DNA of 64,000 nucleotides, taken from Azolla caroliniana (lineage: Eukaryota; Plantae; Polypodiophyta). Position numbers and translations under genes: made by a program. The notes beneath the pieces are model-generated. The model was not told the origin of the DNA. It saw nothing but the letters and a program-made list of their open reading frames with translations, and made no database searches. Shown one piece after another: positions 31,273 through 53,366 of the stretch. The stretch spans positions 17,856,001 through 17,920,000 of the forward strand of contig JBHGNT010000016.1 in assembly GCA_043228905.1 (NCBI GenBank), given 5' to 3'. Within the stretch, counting starts at the first letter, position 1. Every line of letters begins with the position of its first letter.

Positions 31273-31929
31273 TAGCAACGGGCACGGTTTCGGCTCAAAC
31301 CTAACCGAACCGTAACGGTTTATTGGTTCAAATATAAATAAACCGTTTGGTTTGGTTTCAAATATTATGATCCGGTTTGGTTTCGGTTCGATTCGATTTT
31401 GAATTTCATGGTTTAGCGGTTTTTCGGTTTCGGTTCGGTTTGGTTTTGAATTTCACGGTTTAGCAGTTTCAGCTTATGTGGTTTGGTTTTAAGGTTTAAA
31501 AGTTTTGAAGGTTTATTGATTTATAGGTTTGGTTTGGTTTTGAATTTCACGGTTTAACTGTTTCAGCTTATGTGGTTTGGTTTTAAGGTTTAAAAGTTTT
31601 GAAGGTTTATTGGTTTATAGGTTTGGTTTGGTTTTGAATTTCACAGTTTAACTGTTTCAGCTTATGTGGTTTGGTTTTAAGGTTTAAAAGTTTTGAAGGT
31701 TTAAAGATTTAAAGGTTTATAGGTTTATAGGTTTATCGGGTTATAGGTTTGGTTTGGTTTTGATTTATGATAAACCTATTTGGTTTGATTCTAAATTTTT
31801 CATAAATGGTTTGGTTTAAATGGCTTCATAAGAATTTAAACAGTTTGGTTTGGTTTTTAATATAAATAAATGGTTTGGTTTGGTTTGGTTTCAAGGCCAA
31901 GAAACCGAACCGAACCGCGCCCATTGCTA
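31273..31929. mobile_element. hAT-family MITE with AACCG-rich subterminal repeats
   Basis: TIR TAGCAACGGGCACGGTT / AACCGCGCCCATTGCTA; 8-bp TSD ATATTTAG / ATATTTAA (1 mismatch); internal ~90-bp triple repeat. Confidence 0.8.
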
Positions 31930-34653: not shown

Positions 34654-35111
34654 TAACAATCAGCAACGGTTTGGTTCGGCTTAAACGGTTTCAATCGACA
34701 ACTGTTTGGTTCGGTTCGGTTTAAACGGTTTGAAACTGTGGTAAATTTAGTTTGGTGGTTTTTTAATTTTTAATTTTTAATTTTAATTTGTTTTTTAAAA
34801 CTTTTGTTGTTAAACAACCTTTTCATGTTAAAGCCTAATTCTCACATTTTAGGAAAAATCTTTAAAATTTTGAAAAACTAAAATTTTGAAATAATGAGAA
34901 ATTTTAATATTTTAAATTCTAAAATTTAAAACTTGAATTTTGACCTAAATTGAAAACCGAAACTGAACAGCGAAACCGTGGTTTTAGCGTTTTAATGGTT
35001 TAACTATTTCGATTTTTACCTAACGGTTTCATGGTTCGGTTCAGGTTTCAAAAAAATTTAACGGTTTCATTTGGGCACTCTCGAACCGAACCGAACCATT
35101 GCCGATTGTTA
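34654..35111. mobile_element. hAT-family MITE sharing TIRs with the 6.2-kb hAT element
   Basis: TAACAATCAGCAACGGTT...AACCATTGCCGATTGTTA; AACCG repeats; no TSD. Confidence 0.7.
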
Positions 35112-39472: not shown

Positions 39473-40927
39473 GATGCTAACTCATCAAATTCCACATCTC
39501 AGCTTACTCGAACTTGTTTTATTCGGGGGTTATAACACTTATAACCCTTCTATTCGTGTGAGTGGCCGACTAGGATCCACTTCTCTGACTTCGGGTTCAA
39601 CTTTCTCCGCCTCTCATCCGACACATGCAAATAGGCAATGCTACCAAATATCCTCAGGTGCCTTAAATTTGGCTTCCGCCCAAAATACAACTTGTGTGCT
39701 AACCCGAGGACTCCAATATATATAAGAAGGTTGTATCATGTGCGTTCATGACATCATTTAAAACCCCTTATACGTATGTTTTTTTATTATTTTAGTGACC
39801 CCCTTGTGTACAAAAACGATTAATAAAAATACCCCTTATTACGAATATATTTTTTGATAATCACCCATTTTAAATACCCTTACATATAAAATATACATGC
39901 ACACATATTTCTATTCCTAGAAATGATCAATCACCGTCTTTACAATTGATGACTCGCAAAATTATGAATCAACATTAGACATCATATGCAAATTCCTAGA
40001 AATGCTTCATCAAGTGCCACATAGATTGAAAACACAATCTGTAAAGTACAAAGTAATGCACACACAATTAGGAAACATTACCCAAAAACACTAGAGGTAT
40101 AACATATATAAGCCACATATAAGTTTTTGTTTTTAGTTTACTGAGACGTATGAAGAGTAGAGTATACAAAACAATGTAATTTACAATAAAACAATCTTGA
40201 ACTTGACATATATATCTCGAAAAGCACACATGGAACAATCTAAAATGCATATCAATAATGAAATTACTAACAAATTAACATCATGTTTGGTTTCATGGAT
40301 AGACTCATATGAAGCCATAACATTATTTTTTCTCAAACACATTGATCAAACAAATGGCAACTAACAATTGGCAACAGTTCGGTTCAGTTTGGAGGTCCCA
40401 AGCCCAAACCGGTTCAAACCGAACTCTTAAGAAAAAGTTGAAACTTAAACCGAACTGAATCGAACCACGATACCATCCAAACCGAAACCGTCAAAACCAA
40501 AACTATCTAAACCGAACCATTTATAAAAAAATCAAACCTAAACCAAATGATTTCAGAGACTTATGAACCGTTAAGCTGCTAAAACCGTTAAACCACGGTT
40601 TAACGGTTTGGTTTTGGTTTCCTTTAATAAACATATTATCAATGTTTTTTCTAAAATTTACATAAGCCCACATGCTAACATTATGATGACATCTAACAAT
40701 AAATAAAAGATATTCAAAAATGTTAAAACTCGCCAAAACATGTCAATAACTTCCAAACATGTATATAATATGATATTGATTCAATGGCCAAACATTGTAA
40801 TACTTTGATTCCACCAATTAGGTTTATTTCTAATCAATATAAAATTGGAATTTGGGTTTATCCACGATCAGTTACATGTCAATAACTTCAAAACATGTAT
40901 ATATATACAAAATGACATTGATTCCAC

Positions 40928-41587: not shown

Positions 41588-43634
41588 TTAAACACATGAT
41601 CTTGTTTGACTCAGCATATAGTCCACTACATCATCCTCCATAGCAATATCTTCCATATCTATACCCAAGTTATTATATGCTTCATTGAAGTCTTCAGGTA
41701 GTGAAATATTTGACTCATTAAGAACATCCAACCACAACCTAATGCACATTTCAGCCTTGAAAGTGCATGAATGCAAACGAATTCTATCTTGAAAATTATA
41801 TTTTGCTTCAAAATTAGCCTCCTCTAACGGCACTGATGATGCTGGTATTGCTAAATAGTCACAAGCCATCTTGTACATTCGAGGTAAAGCAAACCTAGTT
41901 TAAATGTAATCAAACATTTTGAAACTGGTTTTGCACAAAGTTAAAGAAAAATGTCAAATTTATAAGTTATAACTAGGAAATGTGAAGCAAACCTGTTGTT
42001 GAACCACCATTGAAGTGGATCCGTATTTGTTTTTGCTATAGGAAATCTCATAAATTGTTCCATTTCTAATTGTGAAGAAGACATTGATTCTTGAGAAGGC
42101 TTATTGACACCTACGATTTCCCAAATGTCCTCTTGTTTTGTAAGATTTTTGACATATGTTTCATCAGTAGTGTTTGGAACATCAACGACATACTTTTCTT
42201 CCAATACTTTGTGAACCAAATCAATATCCAAACTCCTCTCAATTGTGTTATTGGGTATTGGAACTCTGAAAACACATATGAAGATGAATGCCATTATGTA
42301 TGAGAAAAAAAACTAGTAGTAAATTTATTATGAACGAGAAAAACTATTAACATAGTACATATCGTGGATCGAGAAAGGTCGCAATGCAAGAAGGTATGGA
42401 CTTCAATGATTCTTGGTATCTTATCAAATATTGTAAGCATTTCTCACTACATTTTTCTTGCACTTCAAGAGTTGCCTTGCTTGAGCTAGATTCCATTGAC
42501 TCCACGTCCTCTCCCAAATACTTGTTACAATGTGTTAACAAGTCATTGAAGGCAAGAGACGCTATTGAGAGGGTGGGGTACTTTGACCCACTTAAATATG
42601 TACAAATTCTAGCAGGTAGAAGTAGCCATTGCTCCATTGCTTGTACATGGTTCCAATCATCTATGGTAAGCATATTATCAACAAAATCCGCAGCAATAAT
42701 AGAGTCCGCTATAGTGCAACTCAAAACATCTCTGAGTTTCAAGGCTTCTTGGTACATTTCTAAGGTGGAATTCCATCTAGTAATGATATCAAGACAAGGC
42801 GGCTCCCGCTCTCCATGCTCATACATTGATCTAGAATATTTTCTAAATATAGCTCTACGAACTTTACTAGAACGTATGGATAACAAAATATTTTTCAACT
42901 TCATAGTGGAAGGTGAGATGACCTCTAATGCAGACTTAATACATGGAAGAAATCAATGAGCATAGACATTGGCTTAGTAGATTCTCTACATACCCAATGT
43001 AATGTCATTGAATAAAATCCTTTCAAACTATTATTTGACCACCCATCAAAGGTAATTGCAAAACGTGAATCGAGTGTAGACAAAAAACTTATAACTATTT
43101 GACGAATGACAACATACATTTGCAATATTGATTGTTTTAAAGTACGTGCTGACTTAAGCACATACGGGGCACATACCCTAGTAAGACATCACACATGAAT
43201 TGTTTAAAACCTAAGGACTCAACATGCACATGAGGCAACATTTCTGTGATTATATATTTTGTTATAGAGCTATCAATTTTCTTCTCGATTGTACGAGATA
43301 TTAGAAGCTTAGACGTATCTATAGGATGTTGGATCATAGACATTGTATTCATACTTGAGGAACTATGTGGCTGAGATGTGCTAGTAATGTGATGTTTTTC
43401 TAATAAATGTTTTGTAAGAGTACCCGTGGATGTATTATTTGACCAAGAAATAGAGCAATGAGAGCATCGACGACGGGGCACACCGTTATCTGTGATATTT
43501 ATAGTGTGTCGGTCTGTCCATGAAGTTCGTAGTCTCTTTAATTTGCCTTTACATATGTTACTTGTTGAAGCTGAAGCCATTGAATTTGGGGATGATATAG
43601 TGTTCAATAAAGGGGCGTTCACACTTGATTCCAT
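41588..43634 (-). pseudogene. hAT transposase (BED finger, DDE core, dimerisation domain), frameshifted and partly deleted, with introns
   Basis: CSHC...LTKHLLEKH; AITFDGWS; TRWNST; FLDPR; DPLQWW; MACDYLAIPASSVPLEE. Confidence 0.88.
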
Positions 43635-45322: not shown

Positions 45323-46217
45323 TTTTTTCCCCAAAAAAAACACTACTTCACATTAGTTAGTAAGCAAATTACATCATAGATCACCAAAAATTCCTCTCAT
45401 CAACCCTCACTCTGGCCTTCCCACCAAAGTGGACATAGTTCCCACCTCATTTTCAACGTATCCAATTAACTCCTATAACCTAGAAATTTGTACCATATCT
45501 ATACATATTTACAACACCTAGTCACTGATGGAAACCATTGGGGGAAACAGCCATCGGGGTGCTTGGTAGTTCCATTGAGGCCTTGATGATGATTTGCCAA
45601 CCATAGGAGAACTACCCCATTTCAGCAAGAACTTTGATCGAGTTCTTTCAGCTGCATCAGATTCCCCCTTAATCGAGTCGTATCGTCCCCGCAGCCAAGA
45701 TACCAACTCAAACCAGATATTTAATAACACCTCACCGCTAAGGATCTTTTGATGTTGAAAAACAAACTTACACCGCCTGGTCCAAATGTGCCAGACCGAT
45801 AAACAAGCCACCATCATCCATATCTCATCAAAAAATTCTGAGTTAGTGCCACGTCGAACTCCAACCCGTTGAAACACCTTGCCACCCTACACTATAAATC
45901 CATGACCATGGGGGTTTAACTGTTCAGCCCAGCCTTCCCCTATTAACTTCAGCCCCTGTACGGACCCCCATACAACTCTCCCATTCACGCCGCATGCTGC
46001 CACTATCCTGAGACTTCTACCCCAAATGTTAATAGCCTCTTTGCAATTCCAAAAACAATGAGGAATTGATTCCAAAGGGTGTCCACAAATCTTGCAACCA
46101 GCCTCACCACCAAGACACCTAAGCCACTCCCCCACCGGTACCGCTTTGTGACTAAGGAGCCACAACCAAAGCTTTATTTTTTCTAGCATATCGAACGCCC
46201 ATAGCCTCCTCCAAAAA
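45323..46217 (-). mobile_element. L1 3' fragment nested in the hAT element
   Basis: zf-RVT CKICGHPLESIPHCFWNC; poly(A); 17-bp TSD GTGTTTTTTAGAAGTTA (45306-45322 and 46218-46234). Confidence 0.92.
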
Positions 46218-46970
46218 GTGTTTTTTAGAAGTTAGGTCAAAATCTACTTTCAATATTTCTAAAATTGATAAATTTAACCTTTAAAATATGTGTTAAAAGA
46301 AAATATTTATAAAACTATCACCCAAACTGTTAAGCCGTTTAAAACCGTTTAAACCACAATTTTCAAACCATTTAAACCGAAACCTTTAAACCGATGAGGG
46401 GTCGAACCAAACCAAACTGAACTGTTGGCCCCTTGAACCGAACCAAACCGTTTGTGAAAATCCAAACTTGAATCGAACCGAACTGAACCATTGAAACCGC
46501 TAAACCGTTAAGGTGCGGTTTCGTGGTTCGGTTCGGTTCAAACCAAACCGCTGCCGATTGTTAATGGCAACCTACTTCATATTTCCATTTGAAATGTAAG
46601 ACATCATCTATTCACACATTCTTACCCAAATCAAAATGAAATAAAATAAATCATTTTGTTATTGCAATGTCTACTTAAGAAACTTATTACAATAAAGGTT
46701 GCCCTTATAAAAGACCAACTATATAAAAAAAAAACCCTAAGAAGTTCATTTTAGGCTATAAATTTCATGTCGTTTCCATCTTCAACGTTGGACCTGTATT
46801 ATAACATGTAACAACAAAGGCAAGAAAACTTAATATACATGGAAGTAAATAATATCTTAAAGAAATCAAAAAATATATTTGGAATACCGTAGGTTTATAT
46901 TTGGTTTCTACTCTTTTCTCCTTTTCCTGTTAAAATAAAAGGCATAAATATTAAGTTACTTTAATATATA

Positions 46971-49900
46971 TTATATATGTACATGTATGCAAGTATATAA
47001 TTCAAAACAGCTTATATATACATACTTGGATTTCATTTCCAAAAGAAAATCGTTGAAAACTTTACAATCGCTTTCGTCTAACTGATAATTATCACATTTT
47101 GCATTATATGTGAGGTTTGTTAGTCCAATAATTGACTCAAAGTCAACCATTTTTATATCTGTCAAATCATATGCAAATAATCTACTCCCTTTAATCTTCC
47201 TATAACAACCAAGTTGTAATTGAACATCGTCAAGTCTATCCATCAAGTCAATTCCTCTCTTGTACTCCACAAATTTATTTCCAATCTTTCTGCGCATCCT
47301 TTGTACTCGTCCTAAGTACCAAACAACATTTTCATTTGATAATCCTTTTCTTTTGGGTCTTGTTGAATTAACATCTTCTTCAATAAAGAATACAACACAA
47401 TCTGAACCAATCCCAATTAGGTTCCCATTTCCATTTAGGAAATTATTTGCATTCTCACATGAGTAGAAGACCCCTTCTCTTACACGTGTGAGTCTATCCT
47501 TTGACAATGTTGGATTACCATTTAGATGACTCACAAGTGTTGATTTAAATATAATCTTATCATCCACTTGAACAAATGAAGAGACTTTAGAGTTCACATT
47601 GTTGTCATCCAATATAGCATCCAATTCATGGCGAATTTCACTTATTGCAATCTCATCATCATTCTCCATACATTCATGCATTGTTAAGTTTTTATTGTGT
47701 TCAACACATTCTTCATCATATTTCTCTCCATATATATAACTCAAGGATTGTTTTGTCTCAATCCCGGGATAATTCTACCATTACCCATTGTGTTTAGGCT
47801 TCATATTTAACGACTCACATAAAATTTGAACTTCTTTTAAACCTTCTTTAAGTGCAAAAACAAGTTGATCATCATTTGAGATATCAATGTAGTCTTGTAA
47901 GTTTGCAAGATGCTTGCCATGCATGAAATTTAGTTTAGACCATATTGATTCTTGCTTCTTATGAGCTCTTGGAAAAACCAATCCACTATCACTCCACTCA
48001 AATTTGGCAAGCTTGTTTACATTTCTGCTACTATGCAAAACATCTGATATATCAAATGCACGATCCATACCAATCATTCCCCCTATTTTACTAAAAAATA
48101 TCTCAGCTCCATCAAACCCTGTGAGATGCAATGGACATTCTAGTTGTGGATAAAAGTCACGAAACATTTTTATAAGTAAAACTACAAAGTGACAAGATAT
48201 TTGTACATCCAAAAATGTTTCCCGACTAATGAAATTACTTTTTAAATTATAAATTGGATTATTTAGAATCCATAATCAATCTCCATATTTGAAAGAAGAA
48301 TGCAACTTTAGATGCAAGTACCACACGCTTGAATGAGCTCTCATGAGGGGATAGAAAAATATCAATATAGTCACCTAATATATGCAAGTATACATGTGTT
48401 CCCAAAGCACCTCTTTCTCTTACTTTGACACCTTCTCCACCTTGGTATAACATCTTTAAACAATTAGTAACATTTCTACTTGCAATTCTTTGGGCTCTAG
48501 CCCAATTTTGTCTATCTTCTCTCTTAATATCACATTCCCTTAAGCCATGTGCATCAATAGAGAAGTTATTATATACCAATGACACATGATTCAATGTGAT
48601 CCATACATCTCCGATTACTGATTGTCTTGAGGGATTATCTAGTGCATTCACAAGTTTCTTTCCATTATGGATGAAATCTTGATTATGAAGACAACTTGCC
48701 ATATCATTATGCATTTGACCTGTGAAGATCCAACCATCCCAAGACAATTTATATATTAAGCATATGCTTGGGGTTAAGTAATCTTGAAGCATAATCTTTC
48801 TTCTCCTACTATCTCCATCTGATGCATGTCCAACAATTGGCCCAATACTTGTGGAGAGGTGTTTTTCCCATAGAGTTTCCACTTCATTCCATTGGCATTT
48901 TACAAAATCTGCATCAAAGCAATTACATTTACATTGTACAACCAATACTAATCGTGGAAGTTTAGGGTGAAGAGGATTCGCAATTAACACCCTAGCATAG
49001 TATCCAACCACATAGTCTTTAAAGGAGCTAACAATGGTTTCATAACCAACATTAGAGTCACCCACCTTTATCATACATGATGAGACACATTGATGATTGG
49101 ATGACTTCAGCCCACAAAAACCCAAAAGTAAATCATTTGAGCTATCCCACTTAACATTCCGCTTAATCACAGTCTCATCCTCGGCAATAATGAAAGGAAC
49201 CTTTGTTATAATGCCATGCACTCTTTTTTCATTTTCATAAATCGTAGCCACATCCTAGAATATATATTCATGGATCCCTAGAAGGAATTTAGTTGTCTTC
49301 CTCTCAACTCTCTTTGTAGTGCTTAATGATGGTCCATCTAAATTTTTAAAAACAAAGTCGTGTAATCTTGGTCCAGCCCACATTTTTATCATGACGAAAA
49401 TTGCCTTTGTGTCTTTAAATCGTTGTCCATATGGCTTTCGAGTAAGGTTTTGTGCAACATCTGTCAAGAAATCCCATAATGCATTCTTTCCACCAAATTT
49501 TCCAGCTCGATGAGCCTCAATAATGTTATTACAAAATCGTCGAACATCCTTCTGTTCCACACTCTCAAGGGATGCTTTCTTGAGAGTCATTACCTTTACC
49601 GAAAGCATTGCAACTTTGCAAGCTAGCCACCATATTTGTCTATGAGCACGACGGATAGTTTGCTTAGAACTTGAAATTTCCTTTCTTGTCTCTTCTTGAG
49701 CAAGATAATCTAGTCGCCTACCCTCCCCAGTTCCCCGATTACCTCTTTTGACTTTAGCCCTACGCTCCCTATACACCCTCATACGGAAATCATTACATTT
49801 TGGAATTTCATTACATTTTTCACATGTAAGATTATGAAAGGGTTCTTCAAGCTTTGATACTCTTTTACAATCAAAATGGCGAAAACATCCATCAATAACA

Positions 49901-50681
49901 CACTCTTGTATCTCATACATCCCAACAGCTTTTGTGTAAGGCTCCATGATTTTGATCGATGAGAAATGATTTTACATGTATTTCTTCATCATTTATCACT
50001 ATGTTGTTATGCCAATATCCCCAAAACAATAGTGACAAACCAAAATAATGTGGAGTAGAGAGCTCACATTCTTGACTAGATGAGGGTTGCAAGGTTGAAA
50101 CAAGAAATTTGCTCAAGGTTTGTTGATTTGAAGGTAAAGCTTCTTGTTTTCATGGACAACCCAAAAATCCACTCATTATTGGTGTACCAGCATGTCGAAC
50201 CATCTCCATTGCCTTTAGATGGGTCTTGGATTGTATGTGTTGAAACAAAATTGTTGACAAATCACTCCGTGGACGGCATAATGGCAACCAAGATCCATCA
50301 ATCTTGCATTTTACCTTCACCATTGCCTTATCTTTATATCCATGAAGTGTTGCCGCTATTAAATCAAATTCTGCATCTATAAAAAACATTCTTCACATAT
50401 ATTAGCATATTATTCATAACTACAATATTAAGGTTTAAAGTACAAACATGCTTGCCACTTGTAGTGTCATTAAAAGTCTTCAGAACTTCCAACGAAGACT
50501 TGATATAGGCCTCGTCATCTATTTTAGATAAGATTATTGATTCATCTTGTTGGCTTAACCCCCTTTGAGCATAATATCGTTTTTCATGACTTTGGCTCTT
50601 AATATGACTTCTAAAAAAATTATTAAGACACACATTCACTACTTTTGCTTCCGTATGTAATATGTATGTATGTGTGTACAT
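46971..50681 (-). pseudogene. P-element-superfamily-like DDE transposase gene, degenerate, with N-terminal C2H2-like fingers
   Basis: Motifs in P-element order: IAEDETVIKRNVKWDSSND (D1), HASDGD (D2), QDFIHNGKK (DxxH), DRQNWARAQRI, LTGFDGAEIFFSKIGG (E). In-frame TAG at 49255, a 4-bp insertion near 48275, and a frame-restoring intron at 50377-50455. Confidence 0.7.
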
Positions 50682-51394
50682 ATTGTATTGTATGTATATG
50701 TTATATGTGTATGTATGTAAGTGTATATATGTGTGTATGTATGTACATATTGTATTGTAATGTATTAATTTCGTTTATTGTATGTATTGTATGTATGGCT
50801 TGTGTGTATGATTGTATATGTTATGTGTGTGGGTGTATGTGTGTATGTATGTGTGTAAGTGTATATAGGTATGTGTGTATGTATGTACATATTGTATTGT
50901 AATGTATGTATGTGTGTGTGTGTGTGTGTGTCTAAGAATTTATGTGTTGGTTTATGTATGTGTGCATTATGTATGTATGATGTTTGTACTTATGTGTACC
51001 TGTAAAATATTTGTAGAGTAGTTGTGGCAGCCCCAACAGAGAATAATGGTGAGCAAAAGCGGCACAAGGCGAGTGGTGGCGGCGATGGCCAAACGAGAAT
51101 GGAGGCGGCAAAACGAGATCAAAGGCAGCAAAACGAGGACAGAAACAACAAGGGGAGAAGAGGCAACAGCGGCAATGAGGAGAGAAGAGGAGGGAGCAAA
51201 GGAGGAGGCGGCAAAAATCTAAATTAAAAAAAGATGAATGTTTGAATGCTATGTTTAGTATGAATGTATGTTATGTATGTATGTGCACATAATGTATGCA
51301 TGTATGTATATTTGTATGTGTGTGTGGATATTTGTTTGTAATATGTATGTATGTGTATGTATAATATACATACATACATACATACATACATACA

Positions 51395-51442
<48 letters not shown>

Positions 51443-52000
51443 CGTCATATATGTATGTGTGTATATATCTAATATATGTATGTATGTACGTATGTGTATG
51501 TAAATGTAGCAATGTATAAAAGACTATATGTATGTCCATGTACGAATGTACATACGTGTATGCATATATGTATATACAAATGTACATGATTCAATGTGTA
51601 TTGATGTGTGATTGTAATATGTGCATAATATCTATGTGTATATCTGATGTATATATGTGTATCAATGTGTATCAATGTATAAATGAATATATGTATGTCC
51701 ATGTACGAATGTACATATGTGTATGCATATATTCATATGTAATGTATGTAGTGTATGCATATATCCATATGTAATGTATGTTGTGTATGCATATATCCAT
51801 ATGTAATGTATGTATGTATGTATCTGTATGCATATATCCATATGACAATGTACATGATTCTAATGTATGTATATGTAGCAATATATAAATGAATATAGGT
51901 ATTTCCATGTACGAATGTACATATGTGTATGCATATGTAATGTATGTATGTGTATGCATATATATGACAATGTACATGATTCAATGTATATGAATGTGAA
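50650..52000. repeat. Complex (TATG)-rich block interrupted by a GC/purine-rich segment (51015-51222)
   Basis: Low-complexity TATG/TGTA sequence sharing longer phrases with 38740-39140 and 53370-54285. Confidence 0.8.
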
Positions 52001-52002
52001 AT

Positions 52003-53366
52003 GACAGAAGGTTCAGCGAAAACAGTTCGGACTTGGAAAGAGTTTTTATCGCATTCATTGAAAGAGCAAACATAAATCCTACGTAGTATGCATGGCGGCC
52101 AAATAATGTTTCAACAAATTCAGGAAGCAATGAGTAGAATTCCCATACCACCCAATAATATTAATCATAGATGGGTTGGGGTTTTTCAAGATTGGAAGTA
52201 CTCTTGGCTATGAAGGGGTATTCAGATGATAACACATACCGGTTTTTTGAGGTGGATGAAACAAACCAATTATCTCAGTCCCCGGAAATGGTAATAGATT
52301 ACCCCTACGCTATTGAGCACAAGATAAGGGCCATTGGATATGATGACCGTAAATGGTATATTGATCCGATGATAGAGGAAATAAGGCCACATTGGAAGTT
52401 GTCGATGTTAGCTAAAAAACCGATATTCAGATTAGATTGGGACCCAATTGATTATTAGTGGACAGATCCTTACACAGGTAACAAGTTCAATTTCTTCCAA
52501 TATTCTGTACATTTGGGAAGGCATGTACTTTCAGATACACGTGATGTGCTGCCAGTTGCATCTCAATATTGGAATCAACAAGGTATTACTACCTAGTTCC
52601 TTGCAAAATTCTGGGTTATTTTATGGGCAAGAAAACAACCACAAAAAATATTGCATGTACAATGGTTAGTTGTACATCAGGCCTTGCCGGTAGGCACATG
52701 GTTGCATAGAATGGGAGTATCTTCTGATTGTATTCGATGTCAATTTCAAATGGAAACTCAAAAACATTGTTTATGGGAATGTATTGAGTCTCAACAGATA
52801 TGGCAACGACTCCTTAGAATTTTTGCTAATTATTTTCCCCCATTGGTTTTCACTTGGGGCATGGTGGTTTGGACATCACTTGTTCGTGATGTGTTCCATT
52901 ATGACAATGAATCTATGGACCATGGTTTTTTCACTAAATATGGAAGTGTTCATACATTACCGCTGTTATCATTACAGTTTTCAGGAGGAAGGAAGGAAGT
53001 CCAACCGTATGGGAGATACTGAGTAGTACTGTAGTATATCACATTTGGAAGGCACAGTGTTCTCTCGTTTTCCAGCAAATTAAAACACCACTAGCTGAAG
53101 TGGTTTCAAGCATTTGGTTAGACATAGTTCATACTTTGAAAGGTCAATGGGATGGTATAGTTGGAGATTCTGATGCTAAAATTTCTCAATGGAGTCAGTT
53201 TCTTAGTATCTAGACAACTACTCCATTCTTGACATCCAATTACGGCACTCCTTATTGGCATTTTCAGCAACCGAAATGGTTGTTTCACCCGCCAATCACA
53301 TAAAGGTTCCAAATATTGTAAATTGTTTATACTAATGATAGGATATATTTACTTCTTCTTTTTTTA
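52003..53366 (+). mobile_element. L1 LINE 3' part (degenerate)
   Basis: WLVVHQALPVGTWL...CIRC...ETQKHCLWEC (zf-RVT); HIWK...C-type C-terminus in another frame. Confidence 0.8.

Follow-up and report, generated by a model that had tools for sequence, protein, structure and literature searches.

A dead copy of a DNA transposon, probably of a P-related lineage, in the fern Azolla caroliniana

In the P/THAP9 group of DNA transposases (structures 6p5a/6pe2), a helix-turn-helix (HTH) precedes an RNase H-like DDE domain into which a large helical insertion domain is set. The P element has terminal inverted repeats (TIRs) of 31 bp and zebrafish Pdre of 13 bp, and both make target site duplications (TSDs) of 8 bp (PMC7776569). 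Zisupton/KDZ elements are also of the cut-and-paste type, with large transposases and TSDs of 8 bp (PMC12730594 for the TSDs), and Kolobok elements make TTAA TSDs of 4 bp, nearly all of their transposases having a zinc finger in the interval from the C/DxxH motif to the late E (PMC9587614). For land plants, reviews and surveys of the mobilome list Tc1/mariner, hAT, Mutator, PIF/Harbinger, CACTA, Sola, and Ginger, with P not listed (PMC9033089), and a survey of 1,007 genomes that included a Pfam screen for P at E < 1e-5 reported seven superfamilies, P not being among them (PMC12973397). An earlier note on the DNA studied here held that P-superfamily elements are no standard part of the described mobilomes of land plants. 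We describe a broken gene on the minus strand, between positions 46971 and 50681, of a 64,000-nucleotide stretch of the Azolla caroliniana genome (contig JBHGNT010000016.1; the whole stretch is called the window below). With a probability of roughly three in four, we read it as a dead, 5'-truncated copy, devoid of its ends, of an autonomous cut-and-paste DNA transposon from a large lineage whose structure relates it to the P element and THAP9.

Seven minus-strand open reading frames (ORFs) lie in this interval, and the earlier note took them for pieces of one broken protein. Comparison with the proteins of relatives by tblastn confirms this: one protein spans all seven ORFs in four frame segments, at 50657-50367 (frame -3), 50317-49937 (frame -1), 49965-48277 (frame -2), and 48302-46971 (frame -3). 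The similarity of the ORFs to the relatives is not a matter of chance, since E-values fall to 1e-106 in protein matches and to 1e-162 in tblastn. By tblastn, the window contains a single copy of the gene. The protein searches described below were run with the pieces of this copy.

The reading frame is interrupted by four in-frame stops (50150-50152, 49255-49257, 47781-47783, and 47775-47777) and two one-base frameshifts (near 49937-49965 and near 48277-48300). A further change of frame, at 50458-50377, fits an intron of 82 nt with GT..AG borders and a pyrimidine tract, as judged from the sequence and the frames, and excision of this stretch would put frame -3 and frame -1 in register with the relatives; it may instead be an insertion, because the relatives L003 and L004 read through this site without interruption. 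The 5' end of the gene is gone, including about 170 residues and the cysteine half of the first finger, both of which are kept in relatives; upstream of ~50690, the gene gives way to a long CA/TA-rich, microsatellite-like tract (~50690-52000), which stands where the 5' end would be. The natural stop of the gene is probably near 47025. The window copy itself is dead and functionless.

The catalytic core has nevertheless kept its key residues. The N-terminal part of the RNase H-like core, together with the helical insertion domain and its DRQNW helix, occupies 48259-49251 (assigned by homology and from the fold of the relative P0016), and the C-terminal part, with the catalytic E in GFDGAEIFFSKIGG, occupies 47781-48212 (assigned by tblastn). 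The codon of the first aspartate, D1 (AEDET), is at 49177-49179, that of D2 (ASDGD) is at 48817-48819, the DxxH codons are at 48667-48678, and the codon of the late E (GAEIFF) is at 48102-48104, so that the D1, D2, DxxH, helical-insertion, and late-E motifs quoted in the earlier note are all present in the window. Across 40 diverse full-length members with identities of 22-42%, the first motif's DE, the second motif's DG, the D..H, and the late E were invariant in 40/40 (D292/E293, D412/G413, D464..H467, and E651 in the numbering of P0104). The window gene retains every one of these residues, and the conservation among homologues on which the earlier note had made its reading depend is thereby confirmed.

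These members belong to a large family. None of the seven window pieces matches a Pfam model, and a 330-residue core piece retrieved 103 proteins, all without a Pfam domain, among them gene models of the liverwort Riccia sorocarpa, the fern Adiantum nelumboides, and the coral Desmophyllum pertusum; a word search gave 166 matches, none of which (166/166) had a precomputed Pfam domain. When a profile of the relatives was run on 1.84 billion representative sequences, it matched 4,416 clusters at E <= 1e-3, of which 757 also pass E <= 1e-30. Intact members have 1,000-1,200 residues. The family ranges over liverworts, ferns, cnidarians, and marine metagenomes; further hosts known by name are the liverwort Calypogeia fissa and the hydrozoan Clytia hemisphaerica. 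The relatives are multi-copy within genomes: Riccia has at least seven gene models, one assembly has three loci, and clusters at 90% identity contain as many as 306 sequences.

A tree was inferred with FastTree (LG + gamma, midpoint root) from 169 core sequences, which remained after 43 of 212 rows more than 85% identical to a kept row had been removed, named rows being spared. All named land-plant sequences and the window sequence fall into one clade of 35 tips with a support of 1.0. The window sequence pairs with the fern Adiantum (support 0.83); deeper nodes are weak.

The placement of the family near P comes mainly from its fold. The AlphaFold (AF2) model of the core of P0016 is of good quality, with a mean predicted local distance difference test (pLDDT) of 86 and a predicted template modelling score (pTM) of 0.88, and its top Foldseek match is the Drosophila P transposase (6p5a) at E = 2.9e-9, with RAG1, Transib, and Hermes as runners-up at E = 5e-4 or worse. 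In VIA-align, the model superposes on 6p5a with Z = 27.7 and a root-mean-square deviation of 3.3 over 346 residues (chain 163-566), whereas Transib reaches Z = 12.2, RAG1 about 10, and Hermes 9.6; among solved structures, the best match is therefore with P and not with another superfamily, as the earlier note had supposed. An RNase H-like DDE core with a large insertion domain between beta5 and alpha4, one of the marks of the P superfamily, is matched by the fold of the P0016 model. In P this domain binds the cofactor GTP, and its counterpart here lies inside the aligned span (346 of ~400 chain residues). Among the 30 nearest models in the ESM Atlas, each named family was P/THAP9 (clusters of PF21787, PF21788, and PF21789; template modelling score, TM, 0.69-0.79), and the closest shapes of all were unnamed Basidiomycota clusters (TM 0.88). 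A language-model search also pointed to PF21787 clusters, with a score of 0.95.

Sequence profiles give traces of the same affinity. PF21787 reaches E ~0.03 in 3 of 21 members, and no member scanned reaches the cut-off of PF21787, PF21788, or PF21789. The P-type HTH, PF12017, is the sole Pfam family that matches more than one of 40 members (4/40 at E <= 1), and it passes its cut-off in P0148 with 23.7 bits against 23, at residues 135-188, 45 residues before D1. This span of P0148 aligns to 49306-49470 of the window, where the window piece itself has no PF12017 match. The link to canonical P thus shows only in the fold and in Pfam matches that are weak or single.

The family and P have in common a DDE domain split by a large helical insertion, which in the family lies behind a putative P-type HTH, the D..D..DxxH..E arrangement, and, as far as relatives of the window copy are concerned, short TIRs with 8-bp TSDs. 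They differ in several respects: identity is ~12%, too low for the Pfam P models to detect; D1 and D2 are ~120 residues apart here versus 73 in P (D230, D303); THAP is replaced by a C/H-C-C-C motif and, in plants, by two CCHH fingers; and a conserved C-terminal beta-barrel domain is present here. We know of no description of such a C-terminal domain for P.

Evidence of mobility comes from the flanks of relatives. In the locus L007 (ENA ERZ25071802), an element of 6.2 kb (L007:5781-12013) has inverted ends of 45 nt starting with CCCGGGGGGGGGACTCC, a perfect 8-bp TSD, CCAGAGAG, and an intact ORF (P0333) of 1,066 residues with all family motifs and the C-terminal domain; P0333 shares 34% identity with one half of the window gene and 29% with the other. 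This element is seemingly intact and autonomous, and it is probably young, because L007 falls in a 90%-identity cluster of 199 sequences. Two plant loci in one assembly, L002 and L004, share the end CTCGGGGGGTGCAGT with a TIR of 15 nt, and the copies of their 8-bp TSDs agree at 7/8 and 8/8 positions. The TSDs of the three relatives are CCAGAGAG (L007), AGTAGCTT, and AGTCGAAG/AGCCGAAG. The inverted ends of all three begin with C(C/T)CGGGGGG, and within ~120 kb of fetched loci CYCGGGGGG is confined to these six ends.

The plant elements are 9-9.7 kb long, and 3.7-4.5 kb separates the transposase stop from the 3' subterminal block (L002:13300-17780 and L004:12300-15980). Nested insertions are a likelier content of this region than a second gene, because the two copies are unlike and part of that of L002 matches a repeat in L003 at 87%.

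Several results weigh against our interpretation of the window gene as a relic of a P-related transposon. The threshold of a Pfam P domain is reached by none of the window pieces and by hardly any relative, the THAP domain is absent from the ~75 members scanned with Pfam, and sequence and profile searches did not reach 6p5a, the PDB results being nil or low-complexity noise. The C/DxxH signature is conserved here but is not specific to P. Solved structures are lacking for Kolobok, Zisupton/KDZ, MULE, and CACTA, and for this reason P being the closest solved fold does not in itself exclude these groups. Around the window copy, neither a TIR nor a TSD was found, as had been reported before, and the family end motifs were not found nearby; mobility is therefore deduced from relatives that are 29-50% identical. 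No RNA run on record holds the sampled words of the stretch. It should be added that general inverted-repeat searches around the copy were swamped by the microsatellite, and that the best flanking inverted match, 14 nt long (46582-46595 / 52743-52756), with no TSD and no extension, was rejected as a chance occurrence.

The main rival is that the family belongs to Zisupton/KDZ rather than to P, which we consider unlikely; it is retained as the main rival because the family was set apart from Zisupton without a direct sequence comparison. The 8-bp TSDs of the relatives would suit it, and the nearest Atlas shapes come from Basidiomycota, where KDZ is abundant (PMC5751038). Both groups have large transposases. 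Zisupton is also said to resemble the family in its cysteine-rich N-terminal parts and in its patchy host range, which takes in basidiomycetes and algae; in 2012, Bohne et al. reportedly found it in fish, basidiomycetes, and brown and green algae. However, the Pfam model of KDZ transposases, which we take to be PF18758, had no match even at E <= 1 in the ~75 members scanned. No KDZ appears among the 30 nearest Atlas models, the named ones all being P/THAP9, the P-specific HTH exceeds its threshold in one member (P0148), and the Ulp1 protease domain was not seen in the Pfam scans of members. A divergent hAT or Kolobok transposase is less probable still, being largely refuted by TSD length and the ranking of folds. 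The C/DxxH motif and an insertion domain are indeed common to hAT, Kolobok, and P, hAT likewise makes 8-bp TSDs, and Kolobok transposases carry SDGDS around the second D, similar to the second-D motif found here. This SDGDS match was the sole result of motif searches in published supplementary data, which gave nothing for KDZ. Against hAT, the Z score of Hermes is 9.6 versus 27.7 for P, and the hAT dimerisation domain (PF05699) occurs in no member scanned, only in a neighbouring hAT relic (41588-41878). Kolobok is excluded because the TSDs of the family are 8 bp and not TTAA, and the members also have no conserved Cys/His cluster between DxxH and E, unlike Kolobok.

The earlier note left open two possibilities, a little-described P-related family and a decayed domesticated gene. 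Multi-copy relatives with TIRs and 8-bp TSDs speak for the first. According to the second, the gene would be a pseudogene of a transposase-derived gene that served the host, like human THAP9, and not the relic of a transposon; we find this quite improbable. In its favour, neither a TIR nor a TSD is present at the window copy, and DNA runs of four organisms and of plant metagenomes contain 29-40% of the words sampled from the stretch, which could reflect a shared locus. However, the copy has four stops, at least two frameshifts, and a lost 5' end, it is surrounded by other transposon debris, and its relatives are present in several copies per genome and are flanked by TIRs with TSDs.

The N-terminus differs from THAP, in line with the earlier description of finger-like segments in its place. 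The family-wide motif is C/H..C-x(10-15)-C..C, found in the window at 49813-49887 (C..H..C-x15-C..C) within the ORF at 49255-49947, which also holds a coiled-coil region and the putative P-type HTH region (~49306-49470); these assignments come from the consensus and from the PF12017 alignment of P0148. The plant clade adds an extension of ~350-400 residues with two C..C...H...H fingers. The two H-x-x-S-x-x-H segments noted before are the histidine halves of these fingers, and both segments, as well as the CFRH..C...C..C motif, are kept in plant relatives.

In the window, the remnant of the extension with the first finger lies at 50364-50681, as placed by tblastn of residues 172-273 of the L003 N-terminal ORF onto 50657-50367, and of this finger the H..H half alone survives (FFRSHIKSQSH, 50586-50618). 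The second finger (VKCKIDG...LC...H..QSKTH, 50219-50308) and a CWG.W segment lie at 49913-50389, where the N-terminal ORFs of L002, L003, and L004 align by tblastn (50317-49937); this interval consists of two ORFs in the same frame, split by the stop at 50150-50152. A language-model score of 0.80 gives a weak lead toward a zf-BED likeness of the fingers, and in Pfam the N- and C-terminal pieces of relatives had no match.

The extra C-terminal region, left unexplained before, proves to be a conserved family-wide domain of ~160 residues, present in 101 of 321 fetched proteins. In the window, an acidic linker and this domain occupy 46971-47744 (by tblastn and modelling), the domain itself lying at ~47025-47555 with LSKDRL at 47505 and WYLGRVQRM at 47319. 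Its model, built from the sequence of the window itself, has a pLDDT of 82 and shows a beta-barrel followed by a helix. Foldseek matched it weakly to BAH domains of DNMT1, ORC1, EBS, PBRM1, and AIPP3 (best E = 2.6e-3), and VIA-align, also weakly, to PWWP, chromo-barrel, BAH, and Tudor folds (Z = 5.5-6.7); we take this as a hint, not a finding, that the predicted barrel may be of the chromatin-reader-like SH3 type. Further modules are found at the C-terminus in particular lineages, namely Tudor (PF21743) in P0119, SAP in P0124, and C1 in P0131; one of the loci concerned is L006:4606-7977, on a TARA metagenome scaffold. These additions suggest that chromatin- or DNA-binding modules have been captured repeatedly at this end.

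Chromovirus integrases carry a chromodomain, and they offer an analogy in which the DDE enzyme of a mobile element ends in a small beta-barrel of the chromatin-reader type that could steer integration. The enzyme class, the element type, and the barrel are different, and the reader-like fold here comes from weak matches (Z <= 6.7, Foldseek E 2.6e-3).

On this basis, the intact enzyme of the plant lineage would have ~1,400-1,500 residues. It would start with the two CCHH-type fingers of the plant-clade extension, followed by the family-wide C/H-C-C-C zinc motif, a coiled coil, the P-type HTH, the RNase H-like DDE domain split by the helical insertion domain, a linker, and the C-terminal beta-barrel of ~160 residues. 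Such an enzyme would excise the element and insert it again where the target has been cut with a stagger of 8 bp, because intact relatives have inverted ends and 8-bp TSDs. The zinc modules and the HTH may recognise the element ends, and the C-terminal barrel may bind chromatin or DNA.

We also advance a wider proposal, tentatively and at somewhat less than even odds: the family may be an undescribed, eukaryote-wide, old sister branch of P/THAP9 without THAP, with zinc modules of its own, with ends C(C/T)CGGGGGG, and with a chromatin-reader-like C-terminal barrel that perhaps steers integration. In this proposal, the liverwort and fern clade would be the autonomous partner of gene-carrying 'Pack-type' elements that have CCCGGGGG ends and 8-bp TSDs.

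Within the window, the P-like copy sits between a decayed hAT element with a fragment of a long interspersed nuclear element (LINE) on one side and the simple-sequence tract on the other. The decayed hAT transposase occupies 41588-43634 on the minus strand, with PF05699 at 41588-41878 and BED-like and hAT-like ORFs upstream. The hAT-like region and the P-like relic have between them a fragment of a non-LTR retrotransposon (45518-46189, minus strand; zf-RVT at 45887-46189). The hAT relic is flanked by clusters of GGTTYGGTT and AACGGTTT motifs at 40510-40613 and 46342-46549, which may be its subterminal repeats, and further clusters of this kind, at 31300-31916 and 34665-35097, point to related non-autonomous elements. 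The GGTTCGGTT/AACGGTTT clusters below the gene, found in four places in the window, were considered as parts of the P-like element and rejected, their probable source being the neighbouring hAT element or miniature inverted-repeat transposable elements.

The Wicker classification is said to include plants in the range of P, and related entries may exist in Repbase. The family escapes a Pfam screen of the kind applied to the 1,007 genomes, although its member clusters run into the thousands and its land-plant clade is well supported. If it is P-related, as we propose, a superfamily-level component would be added to the mobilomes of bryophytes and ferns, and the family would supply the enzyme for orphan elements with CCCGGGGG ends. 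The L007 element is an intact candidate for transposition tests, and the family as a whole would offer a natural case of a P-like enzyme that works without THAP and has a possible chromatin-reading domain.

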